Positions 19,291 through 54,387 of a DNA stretch of 64,000 nt are shown piece by piece (positions within the stretch are counted from its first letter, which is position 1; each line of letters starts with the position of its first letter). Location of the stretch: NCBI GenBank assembly GCA_964019335.1, contig OZ025657.1:744001-808000 (forward strand), written 5' to 3'. The position numbers were made by a program, and so were the translations under genes. The DNA is from Diplonema japonicum. Its lineage: Eukaryota; Protista; Euglenozoa: Diplonemea. The notes beneath the pieces were generated by a model. The model was given only the letters and a program-made list of their open reading frames with translations, was not told where the DNA came from and ran no database searches.

Positions 19291-22200
19291 ATGCGGTCCA
19301 GCACGTGCGCGCAGCGCAATGCGCTGCCTACACAGCTGCTGCTGATAGCAGCAATGATGGTAACGCTTCTGCCGCAAGGAGCAGGAGCGGACCAATGCGG
19401 CCCGAAAGGGCTGCGTACGGCAACGGGAGCCGTGTTGCATACCGACATAAAGCACCTGGCGGCCAGCGTGTTCCAAAAGACGGACGCGGAGATGAGTGCG
19501 AGGAAAGCAGCTGTGCTGTGTTCAAGCGGATGCACGCACACGGCACCCGACCTGACGAAGCACACTCCCATCAAGATCCAAGTGGTGAACTTGCTGGACG
19601 ACGCGAAATACGCGTGCCAAGCCGAAGGGGCAACGATTGTGTCCGCGGTAGACCCCAACGACGGGTCAAGTGGAACGGTCACGTGCACAGCGGCGATGGT
19701 GATGAGCAAACTGCAGAAGGAGGCGCTGCTGGCGGCGGTGAACAAAGCCGTGATACGAGTGAAGAACGCAATCATGCCTATCCGGTACAGTGATGACGAG
19801 AAGACCGTGGCGCTGAGTGGGGATGTGGCGAATTGCGCAGCGAAGGGAACAAGGGACCCGCTGAGCAGCATCCCTCTGCAGGCTGTGACAGCCGACTTGG
19901 TTCTGTTCGTTGCGGCCAACCCTGTGAAGCGAGTGACGGGGCAAGGGACAGCAATCGACATTAACGCTGCGGGCTGGCCCTGTCATTTCGTGGAGAAGAC
20001 GAACCGACCAAATGTGGGATACCTCACTTTCAACGCAGAGCAGGTGTTCGTTGAGGCAGATGAGGCAGGGTACATGTCGTCAGTGGCACTGCACGAGTTG
20101 GTACAGATCTTGGGATGGACACCTGAGCTTGTGTCAAAGTGGGTGAAATGGGATTCTGGATACTCGACACCTACGCCTTTGGCAGCGAGCGAAATCGTGA
20201 CTGAAGCAGATCGCCCGAACAAAGCAAGTTATAACTCGGATGCCGTTCGCTTGCGCCTGTGGTACCTCAGCAACCCGTCATACCACAACTGGCCAGGAGT
20301 CGAACCTGGAATGGAAGGGTTTTTGTCGTGGCAGCAGACGAGCCCTGTGGGAACAACACCGAAAGCGACGTTAATGAAGCTCCCAACGGTTCTAGCGAAG
20401 GGGCGGGAACACTTCGGGTGTGCAACTCTGCAGGGGGTAGAGGTGGAGGATTATACGTTTGACGCGATGGGGTCTGGTACCGCTTTCACCGAGTTCCCTC
20501 AGATGTTCACTATGTTCTGGGAGAAGCGTATTCTGAACGGGGAGGTGATGAACATGAAGGTGGAAGTAGGGTCCGTACTATCGCCGCTCACGATCGCGCT
20601 GCTGCAGGACACTGGGTTCTACAAAGCAGATTTCGCAGCGTCTGAATCGCTCTCTTACGGGAAAAACGCAGGGTGCTGGATGCCAGAACAGCACTGTTCG
20701 AAATGGCCGACTTCGCACCAGTGTTTTTTTCATAACAGCTACTCAACACCGGCAAGCAGCAGCACGCAGTGTCTTCCGGACCGGAAGGCTATCGGACAGT
20801 GCAACGGGGTTCTCCCAACATCGCTGTTTGATCCCCCGCGTGTGCCGAGGGAGTACATCCACGCCGACACCTGGCAGTACCTCACGGAGTACCCGATCCC
20901 CGTGTACGCGACAGGGAGTCTGGACCCGTACTTTTGGGAGCACATGGCAAGGGCCTCCGGAGGTTGTGACGCGATGATGGACTACTGTGTGGTGTGGAAG
21001 CAGGCAGAAAGGCGCGAGGGGTGCCTCAGTGTCGCGAATGGAAACAACAACAACGAAGACTGCAACACGGGCTTTTGTAGTGTGTACGGAGAGTCCGGAG
21101 AGTCGTCGAGGTGCTTCGTAGGGGACGTAACGTTAGAGTCGTCGCTGGCGAGGCCACGCGGAAGGTGCCTCCGCAGTGCGTGTACAGCAGTGTCTCCTGG
21201 AAAATTCGAGCTGGAAGTGTCGGTTGGTAATACGATAGTTAAGTGCACGCAGGCTGGGAAGCTGACAGTTTCAGGGGCGACTACGCCGCTTGGTGCGCTT
21301 CAGGGTTCGATCGTGTGCCCGAACCCGGACACCTTCTGCGCAAACGAAGTAGAGAAGCCGAGGCCAGTGGAACTAGAGCTGCTGTCTGCACCATTGGTGA
21401 CGCGGGCGGGTGAGGAACGCGACTTCTGGATCAAAGGGATGCAGGGGGGCGAAACTTATCGCGGCCACGTAGAAGTAGTGATGTGCGTGGTGAGCGGGGA
21501 CCCATCACTGATCGACGTGTCGACGAAGGGGGCGACTTGCCAGCGCCTCGCTGACTATGACCTCACTGGGAAAGACTGCCCGGGGCTGAGCATCGACGCA
21601 GGACCGACGACAGCAGCGGAGTGCCACGCAGCGTGCTGCGCAGACTCGGGATGCGGGGCCTGGCAGTGGAAGACTAATCGGGTATGCGTCCGCGGAGCAA
21701 ACGGGGCGAGTTGCACGGCCGGAGGTGCGACAATAGAGGTCGGAGCGAAAATCTCACACACGGTGACGGCAACACCTCCCGAGGGGGCGCTCGGGTCGGG
21801 CGAAACGTGTCTTGTGCAATACGTGACACGGTTCGGGTTTGACCTAGGAAGCTCTTTGTTCACGGTAGGTTACGCGCGTTTTGCGGCAACTTTCCGCACT
21901 CTTGGTGCAAAGCTCCTGTTCTATGGAAAAGGCGAAGGATTCTCGAACTACGTGACGAAAGTGCTATCAGTGGTACCAGGACTCCCGGCACGTGTGCGCT
22001 TCAGCGAGCCAGCGGAGAACTCTATGATTGGAAGCGGGCGCCCTTTCACAGTAACTCTGGACGTTGTGGACAGCCTGGGTAACCCGTCGAATGGAAGGTT
22101 GCGAGGTGCAACGTGTCCGTGGGGGTCGATGGCTGACGTCACAGACTCAGACCTCGGGGCAGACTTCACGCTGTCCATGGCAGGCAACTGCTACAAGTAC

Positions 22201-25200
22201 TTTGCTGAGCCCCTGTCTAGAGCACAGGCTACTGCGGCGTGTGCGGCGGAAGGGGCAACCTTGGCTGGAGTCCCGTCGATGGAGGTGCAAGAGCTTCTGC
22301 GGGGGCGTGCTGCTGTGGAGTGGTGGACGGGGCTGCAGGTTGCATCAACAACGGCGCGCCCGTTCACAGTGGAATGGGACTCTGGGACGGACAACACATG
22401 GTGGAACAGCGTGTACGGGGACAGCTCCTCGTCAGACTACGCATCAGACAGTTTCGACAAGGGGTGCTGTGCAGGACTGTGGAAGGAAGGGGTCACTACT
22501 TACCAGAAGACCTCGGCGTACCTTGCAAACCCGACAATCGACCGATGCATCAAGTTCCGAAACAGCGGGGGTGCATACCGCTACGCTGCAGAGGACTGTG
22601 AAACAGCGCTCCCATTCTTTTGCCAGTACCGCCCGCATGTGGAGGTGACATTGGCGAGTGAAGACTCGAACATCGTGACGGCAGCTCCTGCAGCAATCAC
22701 AGGGTCACGCTTGACGGTGTCGCTTACTGTGACGCGGAACGCTCCGACATCAGCGATGCAGTCGCCACCGAACGTTTATCTCAGCGTTGGCACATCGTCT
22801 TCTTTCATCGAGGGGGATAGACGTAACTTGTGGTTCGAAACACAGACAGCATCGAGCTTGCGCACGGTGGTACTGGACCAAGGGAGCCCAGCAAGCTTCC
22901 GGACAGTGACGGCAGGAGAGACCTTCCGCATCGTGGTGAACTCGATGGACGGTGACACGTTCGTACCGTGGTCAGAGTCAATCATGCTGAACGCGCGCTA
23001 TGAGAACGGAGAGGCAACCACGACGGCATCGTTTGTGTGCACCAGCCAGGTGCAGGACCAGTGCACATGGACGGTGAGCGGATTCACGAAGGTGGGGAGG
23101 GTCATAATAACGGCCTCGTCTGGGGAACTGGACCCAATCCCGACGGCTGTGCACGTGAAGGTAGTAGCAGGGCCGCCGACGCAGATCAAGCCGCTAGAAT
23201 GCCCAGTTTCCGGGAAGTTTGGAGTGGTCCTCGGGACCGCAAAATTCCAGATCTGCGACATGTATGGAAACAAAGTGTGCAACAGTGCAGGGATGGAAGT
23301 GTTCCTGTCAGGAAGTGCAAAGCAGCCGCTGACAAGCTCGTTCGTGACGAGATGCAACGGGGCAGCTACGCCAACAGACTGCTGCCGTGGGCTGACGGGA
23401 CAAGGGGTGGATGTTTGCCAGGAGGCTGGATGCTTGTGGGGGACCGAGCAGAACGACCAGAAAGTGTGCCCTGCGGGAACGTGCTGCTACTCGAGGAACG
23501 GACAGGACCTGGCACCGCGGGAGGGTGGAACTGGGGTAGTCGGAGTGTCGTGGCCAGAGCCGGAGAAGCTGTGCTTCCCTAACAAGTACGGTGTACTGTA
23601 CAAGAGCAGGGAACACGCGAACCCAGGGCTCGGGAACTGCAACTTTAACTTAGAGGAACACTCCGACTATGAAGACTGGTTCTACTTTACCCCGACGCGG
23701 ACGGGGGTGCTCACCCTTGAAACGGAGGGGCGCGACGTCACAGTGCAAAAGCCGAACGAGTATGCAGCGATTGGTGAGATGTGTTCGCCAGTTGCAAAGG
23801 AAACAGGGTCGCTGACGCAGCACGACACATACGTGTGGGCAAACGCGCAGTACTGCGACCTGACAGGTGTATTGTCGCACCAGTGGGACGCTGTGAAGTG
23901 TATGAGTACCGCAATGACAGAAAGCGCTTGTGAATCACGATGTACAAGTGCGGGTGCTGTGTCTGGATCCAGCCCATGCATCGGTTATCAGTACTCCGCT
24001 CTGTCGAAGGAGGAGAAAGGCAGGAGTTTAGAGAGAGAGTTGACGGTGAACGCGCAGCGCATCGGTTGTACGAACCCTGGAGTGAACTGGGATACGACAG
24101 TGCTGAGCACAGTGTCCCAAGCGACAAGGATAGCGCTGCTGTTCGAGGCGTGCAAGGCGGTGCGAGACAACAGCGGAGCGACAGCACAACAGACGGAAAT
24201 GTGTTGTGGGAAAGATGCTTCAGGGGCACCGCTCCCGTGCACAGTGACACAATGTCAACCGCTGACACAGTGGGCGAAGACGTCATGCCCGGCAACACAC
24301 CCCTTCGCCTATGTTGACGGGTCAACGGGAGATCACCAGTGCTGCTCTGATTCAACGTTGACAGGCACAAACGTGCAGGGGAGGAGCTGCACGCCTGGAA
24401 ACTCCGTGAAATGCCCTGCCCTGCAAGCAGAAGACGCAGGGGGTAGCTACACAGTGAGCGTGACCTCAGCGATCCCGGGGAAGGCCGCAATCACAGCTAT
24501 CTTCTGGGGAACGAAGGGAAGGGTTCCAGGAACTCACTGGGTGGCTCTCGCAAGCGCCTCGGCGTCGGACTGTCCCACTGAACAAGCATGGGTACTAAGT
24601 GATCCACAGGGAGACGGGGATATCGTGGCTTGGCTGGCGTGCACGGTATCCGGTGGGGCAGCCGATCAGGTGCAAGTAACTGGGCAGCAGTTCCGTTCGC
24701 AGTCTGTGCGTCCAGAGAGGATGTTCTTGGGGTGCTACGCGAGCGGGTCCTCAGTGGCGTGGACGAGCCCAGTGATCCGTGCGACAGTTGATGCATGTGC
24801 TGAGTCATGCCTCGGGTTCGACTTCTGGTCCATGGGGTGTGCAAAGGCTGCAGGAACGTTTGAGTGCCGTTGTGGATCAGGGTCACTTTCAAACCCCCTG
24901 GAGCCGTACCTGTGCTGGGGGGGGAACTCCTCCGCAACATGCGACGGAGGCACAGAGCAAGGGTCGCACGGAGACGTTACCTACGGGACAGGGGGAGACG
25001 CGACGATCGCAGTGTACGGAGCAAACACAAACACCACCCTCCAGGGACAGGTTCCGTGCACAGACTTCTACTCCTTCGATGAGAGGCGCTGCGAGTTGTT
25101 CATGGAGGGGCGAGACGTGGCGGATCAGATCCTGTATGCATCTGGCTACGAGGACTTCCAGCGCGGGCAGCGCGGGAATGACAACGGGCTGACGAATCAG

Positions 25201-28200: not shown

Positions 28201-31200
28201 CTCTCTATCACTGAAGATGAATACAGCACGGTCGAAGGGTTGTCTGATAGGATTGTGATCACAGGACCCAAGCTGGTACTACTGCAGCCGCAGTCAAACC
28301 CGCTAAAGGTGCGAGCTGGAGAGTTCTTCAACGTGCGGGTGTCAGTGACACTTGGAGACGGGCGAAAATGTTGGGAAGGAGGAGTCGTGTGTGACATCAA
28401 CTTCTCAGTGCGACTGGAGCAACTGAGCGGCCCAAGCAGAGTGTGCCAGAAGTGCAACAAGGACGTGGCAGCGAGCAGCGGTGACGTTGCTTCAATCAAC
28501 TACTTAGACCGTAAAGTAGCGGGGACATACACTTATGCAATCTGGGCAAAGGCGGCAAGTGGGGGGAGCTTTGCCCCGATCTACCTCACGGTGATCGTGG
28601 TGCCAGACCAGCCGTACGCGCTGGAGTTCCTGTCCTGTCCAAAGAACAGCTTTCAGATGGAGACGCATATCGCAGGGAAGACCTTCGAGAGGAAGGTACA
28701 GGTGCAAGACAAGTATCGAAACCCGACAACTGGGTGGGAAAACCCAATTGTGCTCGCTGCAGAGTACCGCAGGGGGTCACTGAAGCTGCGGGAGTGGCAG
28801 TCGGCACCACCGACGGCAACAGCAACAACGTCTCCGACCGCGCTTTTCCAGGTTTCCATCACGCAGGCGCTGTTGGGAGACATGTATACAGTCGTTGCAA
28901 CGTCGAGAGGGCTGTATACCCCGAAAGCAATCCAGCAGAGCGGGTCGCAGATTGCACAGCTGGGTGGAAACACTGGGTCATCAGCGGTAGCTGCACCAGC
29001 GCCGAAACAGCTGGAACTCGCGCTCGCGCTGTGCCCGTACATCGCGGTGAAGCCAGACCGACCGGTGAAATGCAGGGCACGCATCGATGTTGGTAGCAAG
29101 GACCGCTCGATGCTGAAGGCAGGGTCAGACTTCATTGTGAAGGTGCAGTTTTTTGACCAGTATGACAATCTTATAACGCAGCAGCTGTCGCAGGCGGGGA
29201 GGGAGGCAACAGTTTCGCTACACGCACCTCCTAGCGGTGTGCAACCTAAGGGAAGGCTGCAAGGAATAACGAGGAGAGTCGTGACAGGGGCACAACTGGT
29301 GTTCCCGGGACTGTCTTACGAGAAGGCACCGGACACGATCACAGTTGCAGTTGCGGTTCCTGGAGTAGAAGAGATCGCTGCGTGCATGACCGAGCCCCTG
29401 CGCATCATCCCTGACGACCCAAGTGAGCTGAAGATTGTGGAAATCAAGGAGAAGACCGGGGGGAACGTAGCCAAACCAGCACTCGCAGCAATTGTTGGGC
29501 CCTCTGGTGGGGTAAGCGGCTCTCCGCTCTTTGCAGGGGAAAAGTTCTGCGTGGGGGTCGAGGTGCGTGATCGCTTTGGAAATGTGGTAGACGAAACGGA
29601 CCCTGAGGTGAGGAAGCGCTACAGGGCAGCGACTTCGCAGGGACCTACGGGGATGATCCCGCCGTTTGTGCCGCGCCCTTTCGGCGGACTTGGGGGACCA
29701 CCGGGATCCTTCAGTCCGGGAGTGGTCGAGCCGACCCCACCTGGAATACCGTCGCCTCCCGGCCTCAGTCTGCTGCAACTGTTGGGTGGGGGTCCACCTC
29801 CGAACCTTGTGCCGCCAGGTGGGCCTCCTGGGATTGGTGGTATCAGACCACCACTTCCGCTTGGAGGAAGTGGCCCCCCGACGCCGCAACTGGTGCCGTC
29901 GAAACCCGCTATGCGTATAGTGAGACTGACGAGGAAGCAGTGCACACCAGACGCTTGCAAGAGCGGGTCTGAAACGCTTAAGGGAACGACGAGCCTGTCG
30001 AGGCGGGACGGGAGATACAAGTTCTGTGAGATGTGGTACGAGCACTCTGAGTGTATCATTGTGAAAGCGTCGTCAGAAGGGCTGCGTCCGGACACAACAC
30101 AAAAGATCTGTGTAGACCATGCAATCTGGGCCTCGCTGCAGTGCGATTCAGAAGTGAGAAGGGTACCGCAGTACCGTCCGATGGGCCAGTTCCTGGGTAC
30201 GCTGAGGGACAGATATGGGAACTTAGTGACGAACTGCGCACGTGACTTTGCCGGGGGGTGCTCAATAAAAATACAAGAGATGGAGGAGGGTGACGGGTAC
30301 ACCCCGGGTGGCGCACTGACAAACCCCGGACTGCCATCGGGCCAGCTTGTTGCAACAACAACACCTCAGGGGAACCTCGAGGCGACAGCAGCGTCCGGAA
30401 GTCCATATGTCACTTTCAATAACCTCTACTACACAAGAGGACGTCCTCAGTCAGACCCACTCCGTCTAGAGCTAGCAGGGTCAGCCTCTGTGAGGGCAGC
30501 TTGTAGCGGTCCGGAAGCTTACCCGATTGTAGTTGTGGGACTGCGCATCTTGTGCGTTGACTCACCTGCGGAGGTGACAGCGGGAGAGGAGTTCATGGTG
30601 TCAGGAGAGGTAAGCTATTGGAATGCGACAACGGACTCATTTAAAAAGGTGACATGTCCCGGAAACAGACAATGCGAAACGAAATCGTTCCTCTCGGCAA
30701 CGGGATCATCGAGCCCAAAAGAAGAGCAGCGCTTCAACCTGCGCAACGGGGCGAGCGGTGTGCCAACGGCAGTTCCGGGCTGCTCTGCGTTCGGAACGGA
30801 GGCAACGTGCACGGCATCAGGCTTCCCTGAGTGCAGCTGGGCGACGCGCATGAAGTACCCGTTTGACATGAACACGGGAGCGGCATGTCAAAGCTCAAGT
30901 TTGACAGGTGTGATGGCATCGGCTGGTGAAGTGGAATTCCTGAACTTGCGCTTCCACCGCACAGGGACTGTGACGCCTGTTATCACACCGCGCTCACCGA
31001 CGGTGAGCACGCAAGCGTGGATCGCAGGGCTGCCAGTCCCTACTTCAGACGAAGAGGATGAAGCTCCGCCAGGAGAGTGCCCACCGCTGAAAGTGGTGGC
31101 TGATACGGCCTATGAGCTCTGCATGGGATCGACGATTGGGGTAGGGAATGCTCCAGCTCCCGCGGCAGGAACAGGGTTGCTGCTCGCAGTAGGGTTCCAG

Positions 31201-40200: not shown

Positions 40201-43200
40201 CTCGATGAGTACGGGAACCATGCTGGTAGCTGGGAGTGTCCGGCACCACACAATCTGGATGTGAGGCGGAAGGTCGGGAGGCTGAACCTGCAGGTTGTGG
40301 AAGGGACTGGCAGGTTGGTAACGAGGAACGGGAGGAGGCACCGTGGAGCGTGGCCCGGGTACAAGTTGCACCAGGGAACTGTCGAATTCCGTGGGTTGCG
40401 CTACACGAGGGCCGAGGTGGCGACCTTCCACGTAAATCCGAGGCAATGGGCCTCTAGTTTGGGAGATGCCCCGAGCGGACCAACGGAAAGCTTGCGCTTC
40501 CACGCATGCTATCCTTGGAGGGTAGAGTATACCCAGGTTCCAGACCTTGTGGTTGCTGGGAAGCCTTTCCGTGTAGACCTTGAGATCAAAGACAGGTACG
40601 GAAACGTGCTGACGTTTGACCCTTATGGGCTGGTGTCGAGCCGCAACCCGGTGTTCGACTTCACGTACTTACACACGATGCATAAGAACTCGCCAAGCCG
40701 CGAGGAGCTCGAGCTGGTGGATGCGTACCCCGGGGATCCAGGGCGCCACGCATATTTGATCACACAGACGAGAATTCTGTGGGTGGTGCGTAAGGTCTTC
40801 ATGGACGGCTTCGGCGACTCAGTATTGGTACTGGTACGCGTCGACCCGCGAATGTATGCGGTCTTCAACCTGAAGCGCTCCACGATTAGGGAGAGTGGGC
40901 TGATGTGCCGCCGTTCGCGATTCAGGAACCTGCGTGACAGGGTGACCCTGAACCTTTACCACAACGAACCGACTCAGTTGCTGCCGCCCGAGCACGACCT
41001 GCAGGTGCAATTCGACCAGCCATTTGACTTTGGGGTGCGCACTATCCAACTTGACCGATTCGACAATTTCGCCTGGGATAAGGGGTCGAGATACGGGGTC
41101 ATAGGCTGCAAGATCGAAAGAAACTACATGCGTTTCGGAGACCTGACGGACACATTGTACGACGCACCGACCGACGACAACGCCGCGCAAGTGGAGCTAC
41201 GTGTGGCAGGGACCTTGGCTACTTTCGATCCAACTTCTTTCATTGACGATTTTGCTGCTGTTGCTGGGATCGACCCTTCGGTTGTCACCATAGTCAGTGT
41301 GCAAGAAGTGACTGGTGACCCGAACGCCGTAGCATCGACGTCGTCGGGAAGGAAGCTTCAAGCAAGCCTGACGTTCCTGATCATCATTGTTGAGTGTCGT
41401 GTTCCTGGAGCGTCCAAGGTCATTTCGAACTATGTTGCCTTCACGATTGCTGTACTGGCGAAATGCGATGTGGTTACTGGGTCAGCAGAGGACTGCTGTA
41501 CTCTCGGAAGAAACGGGAGGCGAGTGTGCATGGGTGGAGTGGCATGCGTACGCAACTGTATCGTTGCAGCGCCGAAGGTGAAGCAAATTCCAGGGGTCCC
41601 AATCAACTTCCCTCCCGAGGCAACACCTGTGACTCCCCCTGTGGAACCTAAAGTTCCTTTGGACCCGCCAAGTGTGGTCCCTGAAGGGAAAGCGAACCCT
41701 CCAGTTGGTAGTCCTCCCGTCGGCGGCCCTCCAGTTGGTGGTCCCCCAGTTGGTGAACCCCCAGTTGGTGGTCCCCCAGTTGGTAGTCCCCCAGTTGGTG
41801 GTCCACCAGTTGGTGGTCCGCCAGTTGGTAGTCCCCCGGTCGGCAGTCCCCCAGTTGGTAGTCCCCCGGTTAGTCCACCAGTTAACCCCCCTGTGACTGC
41901 CCCCCAGAGTCCCCCTGTGAGTCCTCCAATAAGTCCTCCTGCAGATGCACCTTTCAGCCCCCCCGTGGAGTCGCCTCTCGATGCCGTAGTGGGTAATCCG
42001 GTGGACAACAGTTCGGTGCCAGAAGGTCCCGAAAGTGTACCTGTGATGACACCAGAGGCGACGCCTGTTACAGCACCGGTGGAAAATAACGATACAACAC
42101 CTTACACCCCTCCTGTGGAACCACCAACACCGCAGGAGTCTCCTGCAGACCAAGCCATCGGTGCACCTGATGAAAATGCAACGTCACCCGACGCGTCACC
42201 GCTGATGGACAACGCAACGTCACCTGATGATAATACCACTGCATCCAGCTCGGCAGCGAGGAAGCTGATGCAGTTCCAGTCACCGGCAGACATCTACTTC
42301 GCAGAGCATGAGCTTGAGCGGGGGCTGACGAACGCACTGCTGTCACCTGACCCGGTATCCGGGGAGTACCCTGAGAAGCAGTACTTTGTGCCGCAGCTGC
42401 TCATGGGTACAAGAACTGATTTGTCAACTGCAACAGGTGCTTCACCCTATTATGGTGGTCACGTGTGGTTCCGTGAATCCTTCACGAGAATGATGCGCGG
42501 GACATTCACATTGATGTTGACGTGCGAACGTTTGACGCCGTCGAAAGTGCGTGTGGACGACCCCGCAGCGCCAGACACGTACCGTGTGGAGACGGGGCTA
42601 ATCGAAGTGGCACAGAACAAGATGGACGTGGTGAAGGCACCAGTGGAAAATCTGTGTCGCAGGGCTGGGGATGAGTTTTCTCATACTGTCAGGCTGTTGC
42701 TCCCTTCTGGAGAGACTCCTACATCGGCACCGTTCAACGTGCATCTCATGATTTTCTTGAGCAGCCAGTCTACGAAGATTGGGCCGTTTATGTGCGACGG
42801 GATCGTGGCGCCTGTACGTGGCGAGTTTGAGGGGACGTGCAGCATGAACACGGCTGCAGTTCCGAACCAGCCGAGAATTGATGGTATCGCAGCAAACTAC
42901 ACCCCTTCAGGAGGTGGGACCGGGATGGAGCGTGCGGAAAGGTGGACCATTCCGGAAACAATCACGGAAGTAGTGATCCAGCAAGACTCAGACCCTGCCT
43001 CGGAAGGGTACACTGCCGCGACAAGCACAGTGTCGGTTACATTCATCCCTGCATGTGCCTCAGAGCTCGTAGTGTTCGACCCGCCGCCCGAAGAGATTGT
43101 GGTGCACCAGCCGTTCACGGTAGGTGTAGATCTGTACGACAAGTACGGAAATCTGGGTGGTGACTTCACGGTGAGGATCCTTGCGTACGACGCAAGCCCC

Positions 43201-46200
43201 GTCGACCCCACAACCGGTCAGCTGAACACGGCAGCGAAATCCGTTCTGTTGCGTTCATCGCTCTTGGATGGCGGAAACACGTACAATGAAGCACCAACGT
43301 CTCAAGGAGTGCTGCAGTTCACAGACTTGTTTGTGGATGCAAGCTTCCTTCAGGAGTTACTCAGCAAGAGCCCCACGTCGCAAGGATACGTATGGCTTGT
43401 GGCACACGTTGTGCGCAACTCCGGCCGCGGCTGTGATGGTGCTTGCGACCCCTTCGACGGTGCTGGGGTGGCTTGCACTGCAGGAAGTGCTGTACTGTCG
43501 CAGGAGTTTGGATGCTTGTACAACGTAATGGAGCCGGTTCTAGTGACACCTGATGTGCCAGCGAACTGCGAGTTCTTAGAATTCCCAACTTTTATCGACG
43601 GAGGAATGGTGGCGGGCCCGCTGTTCGGCGAGAAGTTACGTGCACGAATCGTTGACAAGTATGGGCTGCCGATTCACGAGTCGAGCCCGCCTTTGACAGC
43701 GAACTTGGTACTCTTGCAGGGGAACTCGTTCCTAAGGAAGGGCTACAACTTTGAAGACTATGATGAGTCGAGGCAGATCACCTCATTCGAGACAGATGAT
43801 GAACTCGTGCTAGAAGGCCCTTCGTCCGTGAACATACAGGGACCTGGGATGTCAGTGTTGATCTGGGCCAGGCTCACAGCGCAAGGTCGGGTAGATCAGC
43901 CGCTCTTGGTACTGGAGGGGGACGTCTCCCTGTCAGTATCGTTAGAATGGCTGACAGTGAGTGCGACAGGTTCACAGAAGTTGCAGCAGACACTGGTGGT
44001 GAGGGCAGCAGGGGTTGATGTGGTGAATGTGCCTCTGGATGCTGACAGCATCCCAGACGATTGGGGCTTGTGGTCCACTTCGCTGACAAGGACAGGTAAC
44101 TTCGGACTGGAAATTGAGATCCTTTTGAACGACTTCCCTATCTTAAAGACTACAGTACAGTGCGGGTTTACAGACTGCTCTGGCGTTGCGGATCCGAAGC
44201 CACTGGCTTCTCTGACGAGGGTGAGGGTTGGAGCGGGCATTCGAGTCTTCGCGCTCCTGGTGACAGATCTACCAGCATTCAACCTAGTCTTTTTCGCACT
44301 CGGTGAGCACCTGCCCTTCGGAAGTGAAGGCAAGATCATGACTACTCCTACCGGGTGGTATTCAGGGATGCCGATGGAGCTGAGTTTCGACAACCCGATC
44401 AATGCTGCAAACCGATTCACTAAGAAGTACGGCGTGGCGGAAGAATGTGACCCCTCGTCTGAAGATGTTGTTGGCAGCACACTTGAGACAGAGCCTGTTA
44501 ACTGCATCCGACAGGGGCTTGCATACGAGCTGGTATGGGAGAACGTGTGGTATGGATTAGCGGAGACGATCGTGATTGGGATGGAAGTGCCCGGGCTTCC
44601 GACATGCATGACCCCGCCTATCATAGTGCGAGCTGGGCCACCGTACCAGCTCGCATGTAAGGATGTCGCCGAAGAAGCCACGTCTGGTGGCCCGTGGCCA
44701 AGCAGCGTGACAGTGCAGGACAGGATGGGGAACCAAGCCATGTGCTTCGGAGAGTTCACGGAATCGGATGGAACCGTGCGCGTGGTGGATTGCACACAAG
44801 GGGATGTGAAAGTGAAGGTGGCCGGATGGAACGAGTCGAAAGTACCACTGCTGCAACCACGATCGAAGACAACGGAAACCTTTGGGACAGACTCGGTGGC
44901 GTCGTTCGTAGTGAGGTACAACCAACCGCCACTGAACGCATTCCCATTGGGTGGTGCAAACGAGCTGACCGGAGCAGATGATGTCCCGCTGAACGGTGAC
45001 GCGGGTTTCGGTGAAGACTTCTCGAGTGCAAGTGCAGACGTTGAGGGATGGGACAAAACACCAGAGACGCCCTTGGCGCCTGCGAGCTACCGAGGAGATT
45101 GGATAGCCGTGGCTGGCGGCGGGGCGACTGGTGGGCGCTATTTCACCGTGTCTGCAGCGACGGCAGATGAACCGAACCCGTTGTTCATGCGCTACCTCAC
45201 AGATGGGAGAACAGACGCCAGCACGCAGTGTGCCCAAGGAGTACCCGAGTGCACACCGAAACAGGATCCAGAAACGGACGGCTGTTGTCAACTGAACGTT
45301 CCAGGGAGAGTCGTTGGCTCTGCACCGTACTCGTTGCAGTTCCGAGTGAGAGCAGAGGTAGCGGCCGACGGGGGCACTACGTCCGACAGCGCACGCGTGG
45401 AAGTAACGTACTGGAAGGGAGGATTGAGCCCCAGAGCGCTCCACACGGTCCGGCAGGTGTTGCAGGGGCCGAAATTGAGCGCGACATGGAAACAGTTCTC
45501 TGTCCCGCACACCTCGCCTGCGGGTGCTGTGTATGCATCTGTGCGGCTGTTGTGCTGGAAGAGAGACCCAAAGACAAACAAGGCAGGCAGTTTCGATGGA
45601 AAGTGTCGCATCGACTTCGACGAGGTAAACCTTGTGCGCTTGGAAGGAGAGGCTGTTTTCTTGAAGTACTCTAGCGACTTACCGAGGGACGCAGCGGGGA
45701 CAGAGCAGGTGAACTCTGTGGTGTGTGGTGCAACGATGGTGGTACCGGCAGTGATACCTGTGCCTCCCCCTGGTACTCCGTGTGATCCGTCGACATGCAA
45801 CAACCACGGGAGGTGCGACTCATCGTGGGTGTGTCCGCCAGACCTGACAGACAAGTTCCCGCCATACTGCTGCTCGCGAGCGCTATCGTTCTGTTGTGGC
45901 GGTCTGATGCGCGACACAGCCGACACAGAGTTTAGAACAAAGTGTGGGAACTTCTTCTGTAGCGGGATGGACGGCGAGGTTGAGGTTCCAAGAGCCTGCA
46001 CAGACTGCCACGATGACGAGGAACGTGGCCACTGGACTGGACCGAACTGTGAGAAATGCAAAGAGGACTTCTACGGCACTCAGTGCACTGAAAGGATCTG
46101 CCCGACAAACCCGAAGAATGGGAGGGAGTGTTCAGGACACGGTCTGTGCAGAAGCGATGGGCAATGTGTGTGCTTCGGTGAGTCTGCGACAGTACCTGGG

Positions 46201-49200
46201 GCAGTACCCGCTCTTAGTGTGAGGGACGACTACCTTGAGCTGTCCAAGATCAGCGAAGGTCCAACAATCATTGAGCGTAACTTCGACTCGTGCGGTGCTG
46301 TGTTGGAGTACTACAGAGACCCGGTGAGGAGCTGGGGGCTTCCTGGCGACGGTGTCTTTAACTTGCTGAAGCAAGGGAGCATGTCAGCAGAGCCTTACTT
46401 CTGCCGCTTTGTGCAGGACAAAAAGTTTAATTACCACGGGGTGGCGCTGGTGGGGGGTGTCTGGAAGGGCAAAGGTAAGCTTGCTGGAAACGTTGCAGGT
46501 GCCTTAGGGTCGACGACAAGCCCTTACTCACCGCTGACTTTCTTGGGTCAAGCGTCTGGTGCTGGCTCGCGAATGTTCGAGTTCCCGGGAGTAGCCCAGG
46601 AGGGTGACGAGGTGGGCAGGAAATGGCTGCACTTCACGTTACAGGACGGAAGTGAGGCCGGTGGGGCGTTCGCTAGATTCCCACCTGGCGACTGGAACAC
46701 AGTGGTGATCTCAACGAACCCGACTTTCCTCCCAGCATCCGAATGGGTCATGCTGGACAAGAGCGAATTGACTTCAGCACTGGCTCAAGTGCTTAGTTTT
46801 GGAAACTCGATGTTGGAGGCCCGTATGATATTGAAGACTAAGGCAGGTAATGGGCACCGCACTAATTTGAAGAGTATATGTGTGTATGCACACAGAACCT
46901 GTGCAACGTGCTCTGCAGATTTCGTTGGATTGTTCTCCAAATGTGGGCAAGGTGACTTCAGATTCTGGAAGTTGTGGTTCGGTGAGGGCGTGACACGTGT
47001 AGGACAGAAGCTCGTCGGGTCGTCCGTCCGCGTTTTCATGGGGGATAACCAACTGGGTACGGAATTCCCGACGGACCAACAGGACTGGTCGCGCGCGGCT
47101 GCTGGAGTGCTTCCGTTGCAGGTGGGGGCTCGAGCCGGAGCAAGCATATTGACGACAACGTCTGGGAGCTTGTCTGCACCGCGTGTCTTGGACTGGAAGG
47201 CGTGGAGCGGGAGATCCATCCTCCTTGCCGATGAGACGAGCACAGGGCCGGCCTTAGGACAAGTGGTGTTCAACACAGAAGCGACCTTCCAGGCTCTCCC
47301 GTCACCGCTTGTTGAGATCCAGGGGGTGAGAGTGCGGTTCTTTGTGGAGAACCGTGGTGGAGTCGGCAATGATGTCCCGTTTGAGGTATCATTAAAGACA
47401 GCAGCAGGGCGTGTTATACGAGCAACGAATAATCAGAAGGGTACTGTTCTAGGTCAAGATCCGGCTACAGCATCTGTGATGACGCACGAGGTGCGGTGGG
47501 ATGTAGGGTCCTCGGGGGTAACAGTAGCGGATCTGGCGGGGCTCACTGCAAAAGTTCTCTTCAGGCAGACAGCGTTCCGTGGGGGATTGGACTTCAACGG
47601 GGCAATCTTGGAAACGGAATACCAGCGCATCCCGCCGCTCGAAGTCTTCGGGTTCTCTGCTTACATGAAGATTCGGCGAGCAGATGAAACGTCGCAAATG
47701 AATGTCTTCCGAGCAAGGCACTCGACGGGCGGAGAGGTTCGCGTAGACCTGAACACCGGGGCAGACGGTGGCCCGCTCGCGTCATCCGTGCGCGTGAGGC
47801 TGGTTGACTCTACCGGGAACCAGCTGGTTGGAGTTGCATCCGGTCTCCAGAACCTGTTCTCGAACAGATGGGTACGCCTCTCCGTGAACGCATCGCTTAC
47901 AGATGCAACAGTGCAAGTCTTCCTTGGGAAGTCGAAACTGGAGAATGGAAAGCCAGGTCTGTCAGAACTGCCTGTGACAATGTCGCAGCAGCAGAGCCTC
48001 TTGTTGAGATCCTTCGCATGGATGGACAAGCCAATTACGTTCGGTTCCGAAAAGGAGAGGTTCACAGGGTTCTTCCGTGATCTCGTGTTGACAGTTGGGC
48101 GCGAGGAAGAGAAGCAAGTGGAGGTGAAACTCCCTCTCAACGAGGCGAACACCTGGTCTACTCCTGAGAACTCTGTGACAAGGCAGGCAGGGGAATGGAC
48201 TCTTGTATCAGTCCCACCAGAAGGAACGAGTTACGACGGAGTATCCGTGAAGGTTGTTCCTACGAACCTCGGGTTCTGGGCGGGCGACCTGTGTGAATCA
48301 TGTTCACCGGGGTACCACGGTGGCTCGTGTATGGATCCTGACTGCCAGAGCAACGACGACTGCGGGATGGGATACTGCGAGCTTACAAACTCGTCGCTCT
48401 TCTACGGTCAGTGCCGCTGCCACACGAACTACGATGGTGAGTACTGCGACAGGTGCGAACCACCCCCTGTGAAGCCCGCAAGATTCGAAAACGGAACGCT
48501 CGCATGCGTCACAACAAACGGGACATGCCCCACGGTGGATCTTGTAGGGATGACAAATGTAGGGACGCTGGACGGTGCGTGGTGCGCCCCAGGTGGAAAG
48601 TTCGAGACGGGGACATACTTCGACCCTGAGGCAGCACCGCAGGAAGTGGATTGCACTGTGAACGGGGTGAGGATGTGCGTTCCTCCGTCAACCGTGAAGT
48701 ACGACGAGTGTGGTTGCCCGACTAGCATGGCGACTGTGTGCCGAACAGGCACTGAAGCGGAGACTTGCTGCGATCCCACACAGAAGGCGTTTGACCCTGC
48801 GGTGTCGTATGACTGCAAGGGGTACTCGAACCTGTACGTGACCTGCCCGAAGAGGAACTGCTCGGCAATGAGCGGTGCCGGACAGGAAGGGGCACCGAGG
48901 CCTACCTGCCTGCCAGCAACAGAGGGAGCACGTCAGTACCCGAAATTCTGTTTGGATCGTGCGAGTGATGGGTGTGATGGGTCTAGGATGCGCGGACACG
49001 ACGAGCTGAGTGGTGCGCTATTGTTTTCCCCGGAAGCGAAGCTGATGCGCTTCTACGCAGACTGTTCCGGGGTGTGCGTAGCGACGCTAGGCGGGACGGA
49101 GATCCCGTCATCCGGTGGGAAATGCGGGCCGTGTCCCACTGTTACTCCACGAACCGGTGAGCAGGTGATGATTGACTGTAACATGACAGTACTGTCCATC

Positions 49201-52200
49201 CACACCCCCACGCAGCTAGTGAAGGAAGACTTCTGTGGTTGCATGTCCCCTGTTGTGCCAGTGTGCGATCCTAGGACAACTGTTGCCTGGAACACGACGA
49301 GGGACGGAACGGTGCAGTGCTTAGAACCGAATGGTCCCGATGGAGACAACTGTCCTGACTGGGTGAAGTTGTACAGACAATCGGGATACGTGGTCGATGT
49401 CGAGGCACAGGAGATCGAGATCAACTGCGGGAATTGGCCCGCGCCAGAGTTTATGGAACTCCCGTGCTCTGAAGAGGGCTATGACCCATGCCAGTGCCAA
49501 CTCCCTAAATTCAAGTGTGCACCAGATACCGAGGGGTCGTGTCAAGGACTGGTGTGCCCATCGTGGGGAACGCTTCAAGAGATTGACTGCAAGGGAGGCC
49601 TCCCGCCTGTAGTGAACAAGGTTGCACCACACGTGTGCGGGTGCGAATGGCCGCCTGACGCAGTCTGCAAACCGGGCACATCGGCGAAAGAGAAGAGTCT
49701 GTGCCCAGAAGACAGTGAAATTGGTGGTGTGGATGTTGTGGACTGCATGGGCAAGCCATTAGTGGATTCTGCACAGTGGAAACCGGGGATGAGCAGGTGG
49801 TCTCTTACAAGAGGATGCAAAACTTGTGACACAGATGCGAGGCCCTCAAAGCAGTGCATGGAGGGGACGCAGTGCCCGCTTGTGAGGTCCTGTCCGCCTG
49901 GGACAGACAAGGCCCCTGGCAGCGAGATCACTTGTGCACCTGTGCAGTGGGAGGACATCGAGTGTGGGGACCAAGGGCTACCTCCGATGCAGAAACCAGA
50001 CCGCGAGGAGTGCTGGTGCGAGCCGACTCCGCAGTATCGCTGCATCGGATTAACCGGCTGCTACGGAAACGCTACGAGATGTCACCCCTATGTTTGCGGG
50101 CGGGCGCGTCTTGTTTCTCCCGTCCCTACGGATGAGTGCAGAACATCGTGCTTCTCCGACAGCCACTGCTCTGAAGGGTATGTGTGTTTGGACAAGGTCT
50201 GCAAGCCGGAAGGGACATCAGCACCTCCTCTTGGAGGGTGCAAGGCTGACCCAACAATCTGCGAACCATACGCGTGCGACTTGGTAACCTCAACGTGCGT
50301 CACAGAGTGCTGGACGGACAAACATTGTCTTGGAGGAGACCAGAGCAAGAAGCAGAGCGCCTACCGCTGCTCGTTCCCGACTCTGAGCGGGCTTCCACAG
50401 ATCCCGAAGTACCAGCTCCTCGGTGGCGGTGAGGCTGTAGGTAGAGAAATGCCTGGGAACCTATGTGGTTCGACAGGAACCGGGAGCGGAGGTGGTCAAG
50501 CAGAGCCCGGGAGGTGCGTGTGGGTAGAGTACGATCCCTCGCAGTGCTACGACCAGCAATCCTGTTTCCCCTATGCATGCGGGAAAAACAACACACAAGT
50601 ACTGTTTTCACATGCAGTATGCAGGATTTCTTGCGGGAATGACGCACACTGCCATCACAAAGCGCACTGTGACAAGACGGGGCAATGTGTGGCCGGTGCT
50701 CCTAGCGCCCCTGTCAGTTGCAGTACAAAGGACTACGACTACTGCAACCCATACGTGTGCGGGAAGCACATTGCGTTGGCGCCCCTGCCAACGGCGACCT
50801 GCCGTAAGGACTGCGAGTCAGATGGTCACTGTCAGCACTTCCACACGTGCCAAGACTACAAGTGTGTCCCAGGGCAAGTAGTGCAGCAGTCTTTCCAGCC
50901 CGAGGTAGCGATCCCAGCGGAGTGTTACGCGGGCAACAAGCGCTTCATTGGCGAGCCTTTTAAGTGTCTGCGTGTGCCTGTTGCAGTGAGGGGAAATCCA
51001 CTTGGTAGAATTGCCTATGCACCAGCTCCAGAGGCACCACGCCCGTCCACGCCGTCTGACAAGAATTGCTCGTTGCACTCAGACTGCAGCCCTTACCGCT
51101 GTGGTAAGAAGCGTGGTGTGCCCTCGAAAGACATTGACACGGGGTCGAAGTGCCAGGTGACATGCGAGGTGTTCGACGACTGTGCGGAGGGGTTCTCGTG
51201 TGTGAAGAAAGCATGTGTACAGTTCCGAGCCACCGCTGCAGCCTGCTCGGCTGACAAGCAGTGCGCCAGTGGTCACTGTGTGGACGGAGTGTGCTGCAAC
51301 TCTGCGTGCAATCTCCCGTGCCAGAAGTGCACCAGCATGGGGATCTGTGACTGGGTTGGTGTCGGCACCGACTTCAGGAATGATTGCGGCAGCTGCATGA
51401 CGTGCAGGGAGGCGGACGATCCGGCAGTTCCGAGGTCCTGCGGACCTGAGGATGAAGACAAGGATCCGAAGCGGAACTGCGGCGACCACGGGAAGTGCAA
51501 CGGCGGTGGTGGGTGCGTGTGCCACACCTCGAACGAAGCCGGAAACTGGGGTGGTGACCTTTGCGACCGTTGTGCTGCAGGCTTCACTGGTGACATGTGC
51601 ACCGTGGCGACAACTGTTCCTGTCCCACCCGAAGTTTCAGAAGTTGCAGGTGGCCCGCCTGGCCCTGTTCCTAGATCAGCGTACCAGCTTGAACCAATGC
51701 CGATCCAGTTCGCGACCAAGGTTCTGGACTTCACGACGCAGTCGCTACCAAAGAATGTTCACAACATCCTTGGGAGACCCGACGCCGTTGAGAGATACTA
51801 TGAAGCTGACGCACCGAACAGAGGAGCCGCTTGGGAGCCTGTTCAGGTATAGCAACATCATAGAACAAACAACAACCTAAACCTAAACAACAGTATTTCT
51901 GCGACAGAAGGATGCACAAAACAAACTGCCCAAGCAGATTAAGAAAAAGGCAAGAATGGCAAGGTGAACTGCAGTACATCACTCTAGAGTTCTCAGAGGC
52001 AGTCTATTTGTCAAAGGTATAGATATAACCACTCGCAAAACATGACCGCAGGTATTCGTCTATGAAAACTCGAACCCCGGTTCTGTGATTGGGATCTGGG
52101 CGCAACCAGCACCCTCGGGTGCCGATGCATCGCCAGGAGGTGGCGCCCCACCAAACCAAGTGTCCGGTAGTGGTGCCATCACGTCAAGCGCCGTTGTCAA

Positions 52201-53426
52201 GAAGCCAACAACGGTTCCCGACCAGTCAAGGGAGAACGTGTTGCCTGAGGACTCGACAATCCTTGCTTTGAGCAACGGCACCGGCACAAGAGTAAACATC
52301 AACACCAACCCGGAACCCTTCTTCCAAGTGTGGAACAGATCAGAACCGGTATGGCACACCGCACGAAAGCAGCACCACAGATCTTCTACTCAAAACCCAC
52401 GTCACGTATCTATGCCCCGAAGAATTTCATCCACCACACGAGGCCCGTGTCCCTGCAGGCAGGTGGGCTCGACGTGGTTGAGGTGGAATGGAAAACGAAG
52501 GTTATCAGGCTTGTGATCGCACCGGACAACGACAGGCTGACGCAGGTATGGCTATGAGCTGCATCCACGCTCACTCACAACAGATCGACGCAGTGGGTGT
52601 CCTCGGCTTCTCAGTGTCGAGCCTGAATCGCACAGGGACGTGCCCTGGGTCGATGATGATTCCTGCTGATCCTGTGGGTACGCTCGTACCCTCTGGCAGG
52701 ATGAGAGAAGTGTCGTGCAGCGGGAACGGCGAGTGTGAGCCGAAGGGGTGCAAGTGCCTTGGGAACTGGGACGGTGCAGAATGCGCGAACTGCAAGTTCG
52801 GGTGGACTGGGGAGTTCTGTGACGAGCTGGCAGTGACTGAGGTCGATGGGCCGGAGCTGTGCGCTGTTGCGATGTTCGAGGACCTCATGGATTTCGAGGG
52901 GACTGCGCTGGAGCTGAGGTGGAGCATCCAGGACTACACGTTTAGAACGACTAGAGTGTTCCTGGCGAGGCACTTCGGTACGAAGTTCGTGTCGCCGCTC
53001 ATCACACTCGGGTCACACACGCACGTCAGGGTGCAGGCAGGGTTCTTCATCATGGACATGCCGAAGCATGACGACTCTGGTGTGCTGGTGAAGGCTGCAC
53101 ACACGAGGGCAGTGAACCCATCGACGGACAGGTCCGCTCAGGACCGCATCTCCGACGGCGAGAGGATCATCTTCATTAAGAACGTTCCGTATACTACAGG
53201 AGTGAACATCATCGGGACAGGCAAGGGTGACTCCTCCGATCAGATGGACGTCACTACGTCATGGAAGCCGGCAACCATCAGTGTGGAGTTTGAGATCTGG
53301 TCTCCCGACATCAAGTCCAAGGCTAACAAGGGCGACCACAGGATGACCCTTACGTACTTCGTGATCCACTCCTGCGCTTACCCGTCCCAAGCAGGTGCCG
53401 ACTCCCCCGACAGGAATGTGAACTAA
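19291..53426 (+). CDS. Giant secreted multidomain protein (~11,327 aa); exons 19291-51846, 51894-52016, 52052-52348, 52381-52545, 52584-53426
   Basis: Signal peptide MRSS...LLLIAAMMVTLLPQGAGA|DQC; a 32.5-kb open frame. Four phase-0 GT-AG introns (51847-51893, 52017-52051, 52349-52380, 52546-52583) stitch the listed 3' ORFs into one coherent domain (ILGRPD..AAWEP..YITLEFSEAVYLSKVFVYENSNPGSV..IDAVGVLG). No C-terminal TM helix or GPI-like tail is visible. Confidence 0.88.
19390..21345 (+). other. Leishmanolysin/GP63 (peptidase M8)-like domain, zinc ligands degenerate
   Basis: ADLVLFV, AAGWPC..RPNVGYLTFN, VALHELVQILGW, GREHFGCATLQGVEVED, FWEKRILNGEVM, LSPLTIALLQDTGFYKADF..ESLSYGKNAGC, MDYC, SRCF, IVCP..FC: the colinear M8 motif series. 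Confidence 0.9.
22110..22630 (+). other. C-type lectin-like domain within the giant protein
   Basis: GNCYKYFAEPLSRAQATAACAAEGATLA...WWTGL...C...EDCETALPFFCQ. Confidence 0.85.
26870..27200 (+). other. WSC domain (further copies at ~24720-25020 and ~38310-38600)
   Basis: WKYDGCFND...MTPEICAKEC...CMC...CAGDTSKPCG...VAVY; third copy IGCYKD...SIEACMKAC...FGLQQGSLCYCG...CGTPCSG...CGGENANAVY. Confidence 0.85.
33860..35420 (+). other. Kelch/galactose-oxidase-type beta-propeller within the giant protein
   Basis: Blades: FVVYGG, PAARFAHVSV..LFVFGG..NELWRF, KLYVFSG, PRGRVQASSV..WYVVGG, ILVFGG..VQRFDL..RW, PAKRTFAA..VYFFGG..EVW. Confidence 0.85.
41698..41940 (+). repeat. Coding tandem repeat (PPVG[G/S/E])11 followed by SPP-rich repeats
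   Basis: 15-nt unit CCN CCA GTT GGT RGT-like, translated as PPVGSPPVGGPPVGG...PPVSPPVNPPVT. Confidence 0.95.
50070..51610 (+). repeat. Cys-rich repeats (CxPYxCG...CxxxCxxDxHC) and a CASGHCVDGVCC module, then EGF
   Basis: At least five units (CHPYVCG, CEPYACD, CFPYACG, CNPYVCG, CSPYRCG), each followed by C-x3-C-x2-D-x2-C. Confidence 0.85.
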
Positions 53427-53939
53427 AGTTACACTGATTTTTTAAACTGATTTGCAAATATGTAGCGTGTTTGTCAGATCTTACGGGTTAAAAAATTCTC
53501 CAGGTTTTTACCCGGCGTACAAAACAAGCAGCCAGTTCTTCCCCCCCCCCCCCCCCTTCTTTTTTCGCCAACGGTTTGGCTTAATTCCTCGGCTTCTGCT
53601 TTTGGCATTTTATTTTTCTTTTCCCCCTCTTCTAAATTTGTTGAGCAATGTCATTTGCTCTCGTCTTCTCCTCACTTCTCCAACCCTCTACTCCAACCCT
53701 GTTCTAGCCGAGAACTCATGTTTGCTTCACCCAAACAGCTAACGTATCTATTGTCTATCACAGGGGATCCACATGTGCAAGCACCGGGGGACACAGTTAG
53801 TAGCGTGGATTCGTAGCCATGCGAACTAGCAGTATGTTCACTGGAAACAAATGCTTGCTCAAGCCATGTTGGGATTCGTAGCCCCATGCCTCCCTCTTCA
53901 ATTTTTCATGGTGAAAGTTAACTTTGAGAATCGGCAACA

Positions 53940-53982
<43 letters not shown>

Positions 53983-54129
53983 ACACATTCAATATATTTT
54001 CCTTTTCCTTTTTTCTTTTTTGTAGCACTCCTCCTAATCTCTTCTATTGCTGCCACGGTGTACCCCTTTGCGATATCTCGAGGGTAATAATGACCCTCGT
54101 CATGCTGTCTAAGGCCACCGTTTGGCTGA

Positions 54130-54385: not shown

Positions 54386-54387
54386 GA

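Follow-up and report, generated by a model that had tools for sequence, protein, structure and literature searches.

An 11,327-residue mosaic protein with a leishmanolysin-type head in Diplonema japonicum: a candidate extracellular adhesin or scaffold

RESULTS

Gene structure at the locus

The window analysed in the present study is a stretch of 64,000 nucleotides of the Diplonema japonicum genome (contig OZ025657.1, positions 744,001 to 808,000; coordinates below are those of the window, and features lie on the plus strand unless stated otherwise). At 19291–53426 it holds one coding gene for a giant multimodular protein with an N-terminal leishmanolysin (peptidase M8) domain. The gene is real and transcribed, and it consists of five exons and four micro-introns, the latter close to its 3′ end. 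In the list of open reading frames (ORFs) of the window it appears as an ORF at 19282–51852 with 10,856 aa counted from a GTG. Exon 1, counted from its first ATG at 19291, runs to 51846 with 10,852 sense codons and no stop, and a frame this long in DNA of 57% G+C is not a chance product. The G+C fraction is 0.55–0.59 along the ORF and 0.49–0.52 in the flanks. The antisense ORFs that overlap the giant gene on the minus strand (more than 20, with 150–386 aa, within 19152–51734) are an expected by-product of a long G+C-rich frame rather than genes.

The TAG that closes the listed ORF (51850–51852) is located within CAG|GTATAG, three bases into GTATAG. An earlier note on this DNA had read this stop as lying inside an intron, and the sequence bears that out. 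We re-derived by hand four phase-0 introns with lengths of 47, 35, 32 and 38 nt: intron 1 (51847–51893, GTATAG..ACAG), intron 2 (52017–52051), intron 3 (52349–52380) and intron 4 (52546–52583). They separate exon 1 (19291–51846) from exon 2 (51894–52016, 41 aa), exon 3 (52052–52348, 99 aa), exon 4 (52381–52545, 55 aa) and exon 5 (52584–53426, 280 aa and the TAA at 53424–53426). The sum of the exons (10852+41+99+55+280) is 11,327 aa, and the mass, added exon by exon, is 1.209 MDa, which reproduces the length, the stop at 53426 and the ~1.2 MDa given in the earlier note. Introns of D. japonicum have a median length of 41 nt, a 5′ site G/GTATG, an unusual A-rich tract and a 3′ CAG (PMC12621601). 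Those of the present gene begin with G|GTATAG or G|GTATGG, followed by A-rich sequence and then CAG; they fit this pattern, and thus the micro-introns are ordinary for the species and no finding by themselves.

Splicing in public sequencing data

The stretch is present in ten public sequencing runs, and contigs of four of these (X1, X2, X5 and X8) were aligned to 49001–54500 (5,500 letters). Introns 1, 3 and 4 were skipped in X1, X2 and X8 and intron 2 in X1 and X8, all with GT..AG ends; X2 had no cover over the second intron. Thus the four introns postulated in the earlier note are removed in the spliced contigs at exactly the predicted junctions. The X8 sequence was identical with the window, and a single X8 contig of 4,400 nt, which starts upstream of 49001 and ends in exon 5, connects exons 2–5 with 3.6 kb or more of exon 1 and omits exactly the four predicted stretches. 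X5 was also identical with the window and retained the introns, showing that it is genomic DNA. X1 and X2 were 95–99% identical with the window and derive from related strains in separate studies. Among the 40 strain differences listed against the window, 34 were synonymous and six conservative in the spliced frame, exons 3–5 included. These contigs demonstrate that the gene is transcribed and spliced in its 3′ part. None of them has a loose end resembling a spliced leader (SL) within this 5.5 kb.

Selection along the whole frame

Comparison with the closest paralogue in the same genome (C2) gave a non-synonymous rate (Ka) of 0.051, a synonymous rate (Ks) of 0.72 and a Ka/Ks ratio of 0.07 overall, a value that also holds for exon 1. 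The ratio was between 0.04 and 0.10 in every one of eleven blocks of 1,000 codons, demonstrating that the whole frame is coding. Purifying selection on the gene is strong from one end to the other.

Signal peptide and M8 head

The protein starts with a predicted signal peptide of about 33 aa (19291–19389), read by eye as a basic n-region, a hydrophobic core LLLIAAMMVTLL and a cleavage site GAGA|DQ. The paralogues C2 and C60 have the same start methionine and a similar hydrophobic leader, in support of the signal peptide of the earlier note. With such a leader the protein would enter the secretory pathway from its N-terminus.

The leader is followed by the M8 domain (19396–21360), which is matched by Pfam PF01457 with an E-value of 6.2e-36 (124.6 bits against a cut-off of 21) and by the leishmanolysin structure 1lml in the PDB (E 1.7e-10); the 'M8-like' head proposed in the earlier note is therefore a clear member of the family. 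At residues 268–272 (20092–20106), however, the sequence HELVQ replaces the HExxH zinc motif. A search for H[ED]xxH throughout exon 1 found none. The position of the third zinc ligand is occupied by phenylalanine (TMFWEKR), where the relatives C50, C63, P0006, P0008 and P0010 have histidine (xxHWEKR); the same five retain HELxH, and HExxH is lost in C2 and C60. The GEVM of the Met-turn is retained. Since two of the three zinc ligands are lost, the M8 head most likely binds rather than cleaves. On these residues an active protease was rejected as a reading of the head, which appears catalytically dead, with catalysis very unlikely; the earlier note does not mention this loss.

The N-terminal 650 residues are homologous with leishmanolysin (GP63) of kinetoplastids and with invadolysin over most of the M8 profile, and they share with GP63 the Met-turn, the cysteine-rich C-terminal lobe and a euglenozoan origin as a surface or secreted protein. 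GP63 has about 600 aa and is anchored by glycosylphosphatidylinositol (GPI). The present protein differs from it in the HELVQ and the phenylalanine, and in that more than 10,600 residues follow the head and no anchor is found. Neither a convincing transmembrane (TM) segment nor a GPI anchor was detected in the protein, and the only hydrophobic 19-mer, at residue 8319, contains aspartate and proline. The protein ends in a polar, conserved sequence (...YPSQAGADSPDRNVN).

Ig modules and cassettes of the middle region

A recurring motif (V.P..P..L...G..F.V.V.D..GN) was used to build a hidden Markov model (HMM), with which 22–23 immunoglobulin (Ig)-like modules of the bacterial Big type, marked by DxxGN, were located between residues 888 and 8546 (21952–44928). 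Each module has ~95 aa, and at irregular spacing they make up ~2,200 aa, about 20% of the chain. A profile of 22 modules (A1) matched SbsC-type Ig domains of the Geobacillus S-layer with E-values of 2.8e-6 to 4.4e-4 and, more weakly, Ig repeats of RTX adhesins (0.008–0.09). The scores of Pfam Big_1 (14.2 bits against 34.9) and Invasin_D3 (20.9 bits against 33) were both under the gathering score. Self-BLAST of exon 1 revealed almost no repeats except in the cysteine-rich tail, indicating that the chain is a mosaic of very diverged modules, and a rod of tandem repeats was rejected on this result. Thus the Ig modules of the 'Ig rod' in the earlier note are real; they are dispersed and highly diverged, and a continuous rod is not supported.

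Two cassettes in this region were identified above the family cut-offs. One is a Kelch β-propeller of the attractin/KLHDC2 type at residues 4913–5210 (34027–34920; Pfam PF24681, E 2.6e-25, 89.4 bits against 50), where Kelch_1, Kelch_2 and Kelch_6 also exceed their own cut-offs. The other is a WSC domain at residues 6345–6425 (38323–38565; PF01822, E 1e-12, 48.5 bits against 27.8, profile positions 2–82 of 82), which also matches the WSC domain of Kremen-1 (E 7.8e-10). The C-lectin and PAN cassettes that the earlier note had listed beside these two gave only weak matches below threshold. A C-type-lectin-like segment at residues 964–1061 (22180–22473) matches NKG2-D in the PDB with E 3.8e-4 over 55 aa and Pfam Lectin_C with E 0.033 (15.4 bits against 22.6; the short paralogue C51 reaches 22.5 bits, just under the cut-off), and PAN_1/PAN_4 score 17–20 bits at three sites against cut-offs of 21–27. 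The sequence also contains two linkers, one rich in proline and glycine at residues about 3450–3540 (29638–29910) and one proline-rich at residues about 7440–7600 (41608–42090) with about 16 PPVG repeats, placed at residues about 7470–7545, the latter being the directly visible PPVG linker of the earlier note. A PDB sequence search with three large pieces of the protein returned leishmanolysin, the weak NKG2-D match and the Kremen WSC only, with nothing for residues 8501–10852.

Jelly rolls and cysteine-rich modules of the C-terminal third

Residues 8560–9640 were folded with AlphaFold2 (AF2) using a nine-sequence family alignment (A2), which gave a model with confident cores and a mean predicted local distance difference test (pLDDT) score of 59.7. 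Its first domain, residues 8564–8785 (44980–45645; pLDDT 72–88), is modelled as a jelly roll like those of carbohydrate-binding modules (CBMs) and the sugar-binding domain of Fbs1, with VIA Z-scores of 11.3 to CBM16 and 11.4 to FBG3; an atlas lead pointed to CBM_4_9. An EGF-type cysteine module follows at residues 8890–8962 (45958–46176), which matches short EGF-bearing proteins (P0012–P0017). Two tandem jelly rolls of the LamG/pentraxin type are modelled at residues 9305–9447 and 9448–9640 (47203–48210). The second gave Z 13.6 to SAP (root-mean-square deviation, rmsd, 3.1 over 145) and Z 13.1 to laminin α2 LG5 (rmsd 2.4 over 139), and LG4-5 pairs align across both domains (model residues 746–1081). 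No sequence-level match to the LamG-like region was found in PDB or Pfam searches. The earlier note had placed a CBM-like jelly roll and a LamG-like domain in these two places, and the fold matches agree with both. Its fibrinogen-C-like start between them did not find support: for residues about 8997–9300 there was no Pfam match with E<0.1, the profile A4 (residues 8990–9310) had no PDB match with E<1, and fibrinogen chains were absent among the top fold matches of a model of low confidence there.

The cysteine-rich tail at residues 9641–10770 (48211–51600) is composed of laminin/teneurin-type EGF modules and five C-x-PY-x-CG repeats, in keeping with the EGF, laminin-EGF and cysteine repeats noted earlier. 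For the C-terminal domain that the introns divide, where the earlier note had placed a pappalysin/FBXL4-like galactose-binding fold, Pfam scans of the homologues P0005 and P0007 were uninformative, and the profile A5 of the C-terminal 4.2k aa had no match in the PDB. Exon 5 encodes a further EGF module (exon residues 43–80; 52710–52823), matched by EGF_Teneurin with E 5.8e-4, under the cut-off, and showing an invariant cysteine pattern in the alignment A3. With the same alignment AF2 predicted a terminal β jelly roll (exon residues 91–265; 52854–53378) with a core pLDDT of 70–89, so that the terminal β domain of the earlier note now has a predicted fold. Foldseek related it to the Eph ligand-binding domain (E 2e-5) and a reelin repeat, and the Z-scores were 10.2 for a sialidase CBM, 9.5 for reelin and 8–9 for CBM4/22. 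In all, at least six modules of the protein are predicted to have carbohydrate-binding fold types.

Paralogues in the same genome

The D. japonicum assembly (62.5 Mb, 132 contigs) contains six relatives of the gene. C2 (10.8k aa) is 91% identical and has the same four introns, at identical codon positions and with lengths of 36, 35, 37 and 33 nt, which leave its exons in frame; where these lengths differ from those of the present gene, they do so by non-multiples of three. That C2 is an allele was rejected on a nucleotide identity of ~82% in the 3′-terminal ~2 kb (51500–53426), the Ks of 0.72 over the whole frame and unrelated flanks. Intron 1 of C2 is in frame and stop-free, and the ORF track reads through its 36 nt, adding 12 false residues. 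C60 (first exon 10.6k aa) is 53% identical and has an additional micro-intron in its last exon (L010:3849-3894), absent in the present gene and composed almost entirely of A/T homopolymer runs (GTATAAAAAAAATTTTTTTTTGAAAAAAAAAAATTTTTTTTTTTAG).

C50 has a first exon of 7.5k aa and further exons (~9.3k aa in all). It resembles the present protein in the M8 head, in the DxxGN Ig modules (23 against 22), in the collinear C-terminal modules and in the terminal jelly roll, which is 48% identical. It differs in an overall identity of about 30–36%, in being shorter, in having introns that are more numerous or longer toward the 3′ end, and in the M8 site, where HELIH and the third histidine are retained, making it a probable active protease.

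The other three relatives are short and M8-headed: C51 (a 3,276-aa ORF; terminal domain 39% identical), C64 (ORFs of 2,717 aa and 382 aa; terminal domain 37% identical) and C63 (a 2,207-aa ORF; head about 30% identical). The terminal jelly roll is common to all own-genome relatives searched for it, except C63. Within the family the zinc site is intact in C50 (HELIH) and C63 (HELFH), and destroyed in the present gene, C2 and C60 (HELVQ), in C51 (LQSLLQ) and in C64 (LQSMLH). C63 (L018:831-7451, minus strand) also has a C2-domain match (PF00168, E 1.2e-4, residues 1681–1767), which is odd in a secreted protein.

Homologues in other diplonemids

Collinear transcripts encoding up to 6,827 aa were found in Diplonema ambulator, Namystynia and Artemidia, which answers the earlier note's suggestion to look for homologues. 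P0001 of D. ambulator, a Trinity ORF with 6,823 aa, aligns collinearly to residues 3030–9925 at 57–76% identity. The 6,827-aa ORF of Namystynia karyoxenos (P0004) joins the M8 head, from residue 518 of the present protein onward, to the C-terminus in one transcript and has no counterpart of residues 1600–6140. P0004, and P0005 and P0007 of Artemidia motanka, all transcript-derived, are collinear with the present gene from the end of exon 1 through exons 2–5 and end within a few residues of its stop; in exon 5 the hemistasiid homologues P0004 and P0005 are 54–56% identical and have the same end. Exons 2, 3 and 4 are supported both by the spliced contigs and by homologue collinearity. Gene calls from ENA assemblies (P0006, P0008 and P0010; 7.2–8.0k aa) begin at residues 30–100 and are collinear to residues 9100–9800.

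When 1.84 billion representative proteins were scanned in full with HMMER for matches to residues 8560–9640, only 17 were obtained, 11 of which were members of the giant family. Those giants with a recorded source organism are all diplonemid; the remaining matches are short, mostly on the EGF module. The M8 head alone as a query gave two distant matches only, and the N-terminal 3,030 aa gave none in the length band searched. The cysteine-rich tail and the terminal jelly roll are the best conserved regions: their identity to distant homologues is 40–58%, that of the other regions about 30%. Taken together, the M8-headed giants form a small undescribed family across diplonemids, in both Diplonemidae and Hemistasiidae. 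In the literature on diplonemid leishmanolysin, secretome and adhesion we found no account of it. The earlier note's statement that no protein of this architecture has been described thus holds for the literature searched, with the qualification that unnamed homologues exist in public diplonemid data, next to the six paralogues.

Surroundings of the gene

Directly upstream, an ORF of 3,802 aa (7223–18631) encodes ankyrin repeats and, beyond them, a Polycystin_dom and a PKD_channel/ion-transport region (Pfam E 1e-14 and 1e-11); no Pfam family was matched in the 1,800 aa at its start. Downstream, in the 3′ untranslated region, the contigs of all runs break at a run of 17 C (53540–53556). X5, which is DNA, and X8 carry a variant form in which 53554–54161 is replaced by 34 other letters, so that the intergenic region (53553–54162) harbours either an indel polymorphism or a second haplotype. 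Elsewhere in the assembly, contig C119 carries 18S rRNA genes at intervals of 6,825 bp, and partial 18S-like fragments of 110–590 nt are scattered over six contigs (C37, C78, C80, C18, C34 and C22).

DISCUSSION

We propose that this one gene encodes a secreted multimodular protein of 1.21 MDa that acts as an extracellular multivalent adhesin or scaffold, and we put the probability of this reading as a whole at roughly 0.6. With neither a TM nor a GPI anchor, the protein would be released or held at the cell surface by binding. Its leishmanolysin-type head, with two of the three zinc ligands lost, would be a binder rather than a cleaver. In the middle ~7,700 residues the 22–23 Ig modules would alternate with the weak C-lectin/PAN segments, the Kelch and WSC domains and the two proline-rich hinges, and in the C-terminal third the CBM-like, the two LamG-like and the terminal jelly rolls would be spaced by EGF-type and other cysteine-rich modules. 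The product might then be a long disulfide-stabilized extracellular scaffold displaying many different glycan- or ligand-binding modules, and the result multivalent adhesion to prey, particles, the substratum or the cell's own coat. Secretion, an elongated form, the binding of glycans and a role in adhesion are all inferred. Diplonemids are predatory and feed on cell walls and polysaccharides (PMC10161547), and an adhesin or scaffold fits this lifestyle.

Several points weigh against this proposal. The RNA contigs examined extend over 49001–54500, the 3′ part of a gene of some 34 kb; the giant is known here from gene and transcript sequences; and post-translational cleavage may divide it into smaller pieces. 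Furthermore, the C-lectin and PAN matches are under the family cut-offs, about 60% of the chain is without an assigned fold, and the mean pLDDT is only about 60 in both AF2 models. Lastly, jelly-roll, LamG and Ig folds are also used for protein–protein binding.

Among the closest parallels are the giant bacterial RTX adhesins (such as Marinomonas MpIBP of 1.5 MDa, LapA/LapF and SiiE), with which the present protein has in common a megadalton size, a stalk of bacterial-type Ig modules, ligand- or sugar-binding modules toward one end and a likely adhesive role; the profile A1 also matches MpAFP RII and Lap repeats weakly. It differs from them in the eukaryotic signal peptide, the introns, the cysteine-rich EGF modules and the nearly repeat-free modules (by self-BLAST), and Pfam scans gave no RTX-type calcium-binding repeat family. 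Among metazoan mosaics, attractin likewise combines a Kelch propeller with laminin-type EGF, and also with C-lectin, weakly matched here, laminin, agrin and neurexin have LamG pairs flanked by EGF, and reelin has a jelly roll–EGF–jelly roll arrangement. However, sequence homology with attractin, laminin/agrin/perlecan and reelin is limited to Kelch and WSC, and the present protein has another module order and an M8 head, is three to ten times larger and is restricted to diplonemids. The likeness is convergent domain use and not orthology. None of the recognized modules is of a new type, and very large modular adhesins as such have been known before; what is new is the M8-headed, non-repetitive 11k-aa architecture and the split into active and dead heads.

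The conservation pattern bears on an alternative that we regard as unlikely, but less so than the others: the protein could be mainly structural, as a surface coat, as a fibre of extracellular matrix or mucilage, or as a component of the feeding apparatus or extrusomes, with its lectin-like modules serving self-assembly rather than the capture of foreign ligands. That the cysteine-rich tail and the terminal jelly roll are the best conserved parts is what would be expected of an assembly or anchoring end, and the jelly roll–EGF–jelly roll order resembles a reelin repeat. Yet self-BLAST revealed no repetitive self-similar rod, the Pfam scans no known polymerization domain (vWD, ZP or collagen), and the variety of binding modules suits heterogeneous ligands.

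It is rather improbable that the long frame is expressed and its product then cut, by internal trans-splicing or polyadenylation or by proteolysis, into several separately acting secreted proteins. Polycistronic transcripts of diplonemids are resolved by SL trans-splicing (PMC10161547). In addition, the two long proline-rich linkers are possible cleavage-prone hinges, and the X1 contig depth, an unreliable measure when derived from contigs, is higher in the last 2 kb than upstream. Such a division is difficult to reconcile with 32.6 kb without a stop, a uniform Ka/Ks with no relaxed 'intergenic' block, transcripts of relatives with ORFs of 6.8k aa that span many domain borders, the domain order that is collinear throughout the family and the lack of SL-like ends in the region covered by contigs. 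A single 34-kb mRNA is strongly suggested by the open frame, the selection and the relatives' transcripts, the RNA contigs of the gene itself covering its 3′ part.

The idea that the giant serves the adjacent ankyrin and polycystin-type channel as a separate ectodomain, the two forming a 'split polycystin' sensory pair, could draw on the channel gene directly upstream on the same strand and on WSC, the weakly matched C-lectin and Ig-like repeats, module types that polycystin-1 ectodomains also carry, but it is very improbable and was rejected because the adjacency is not conserved at the paralogues (the contigs of C2, C60 and C50 hold no polycystin-channel homologue and the C2 flanks are unrelated), same-strand neighbours are usual in polycistronic diplonemid arrays, and the protein shows neither a Pfam match to REJ, GPS or PLAT nor a convincing TM segment (the polycystin-1-like 11-TM region is absent).

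The gene is among the largest protist protein-coding genes with direct splicing evidence, and it encodes no tandem-repeat protein, its 11,327 almost non-repeating residues being under purifying selection. It defines a family in which a leishmanolysin head, active or dead, is fused to a very long chain of Ig, lectin and EGF modules. The family provides targets for secretome proteomics, for glycan arrays and for knockouts in the tractable Paradiplonema papillatum, and, in its active and dead heads, a natural pair with which the role of a pseudo-M8 domain can be addressed. For annotation it is a caution too: genes of this kind are cut short or broken up by standard pipelines and ORF tracks.

A more far-reaching and doubtful possibility is that the M8-headed giants are a diplonemid-specific capture system, in which sub-micrometre non-repetitive filaments with an active head (C50) or a dead, substrate-trapping one (the present gene, C2 and C60) would use their lectin-type modules to tether prey walls and polysaccharide particles for extracellular digestion. 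Diplonemids are among the ocean's most abundant groups of heterotrophs. If such a system existed, it would be a eukaryotic analogue of the bacterial megadalton adhesins and would offer a molecular handle on how diplonemids feed.

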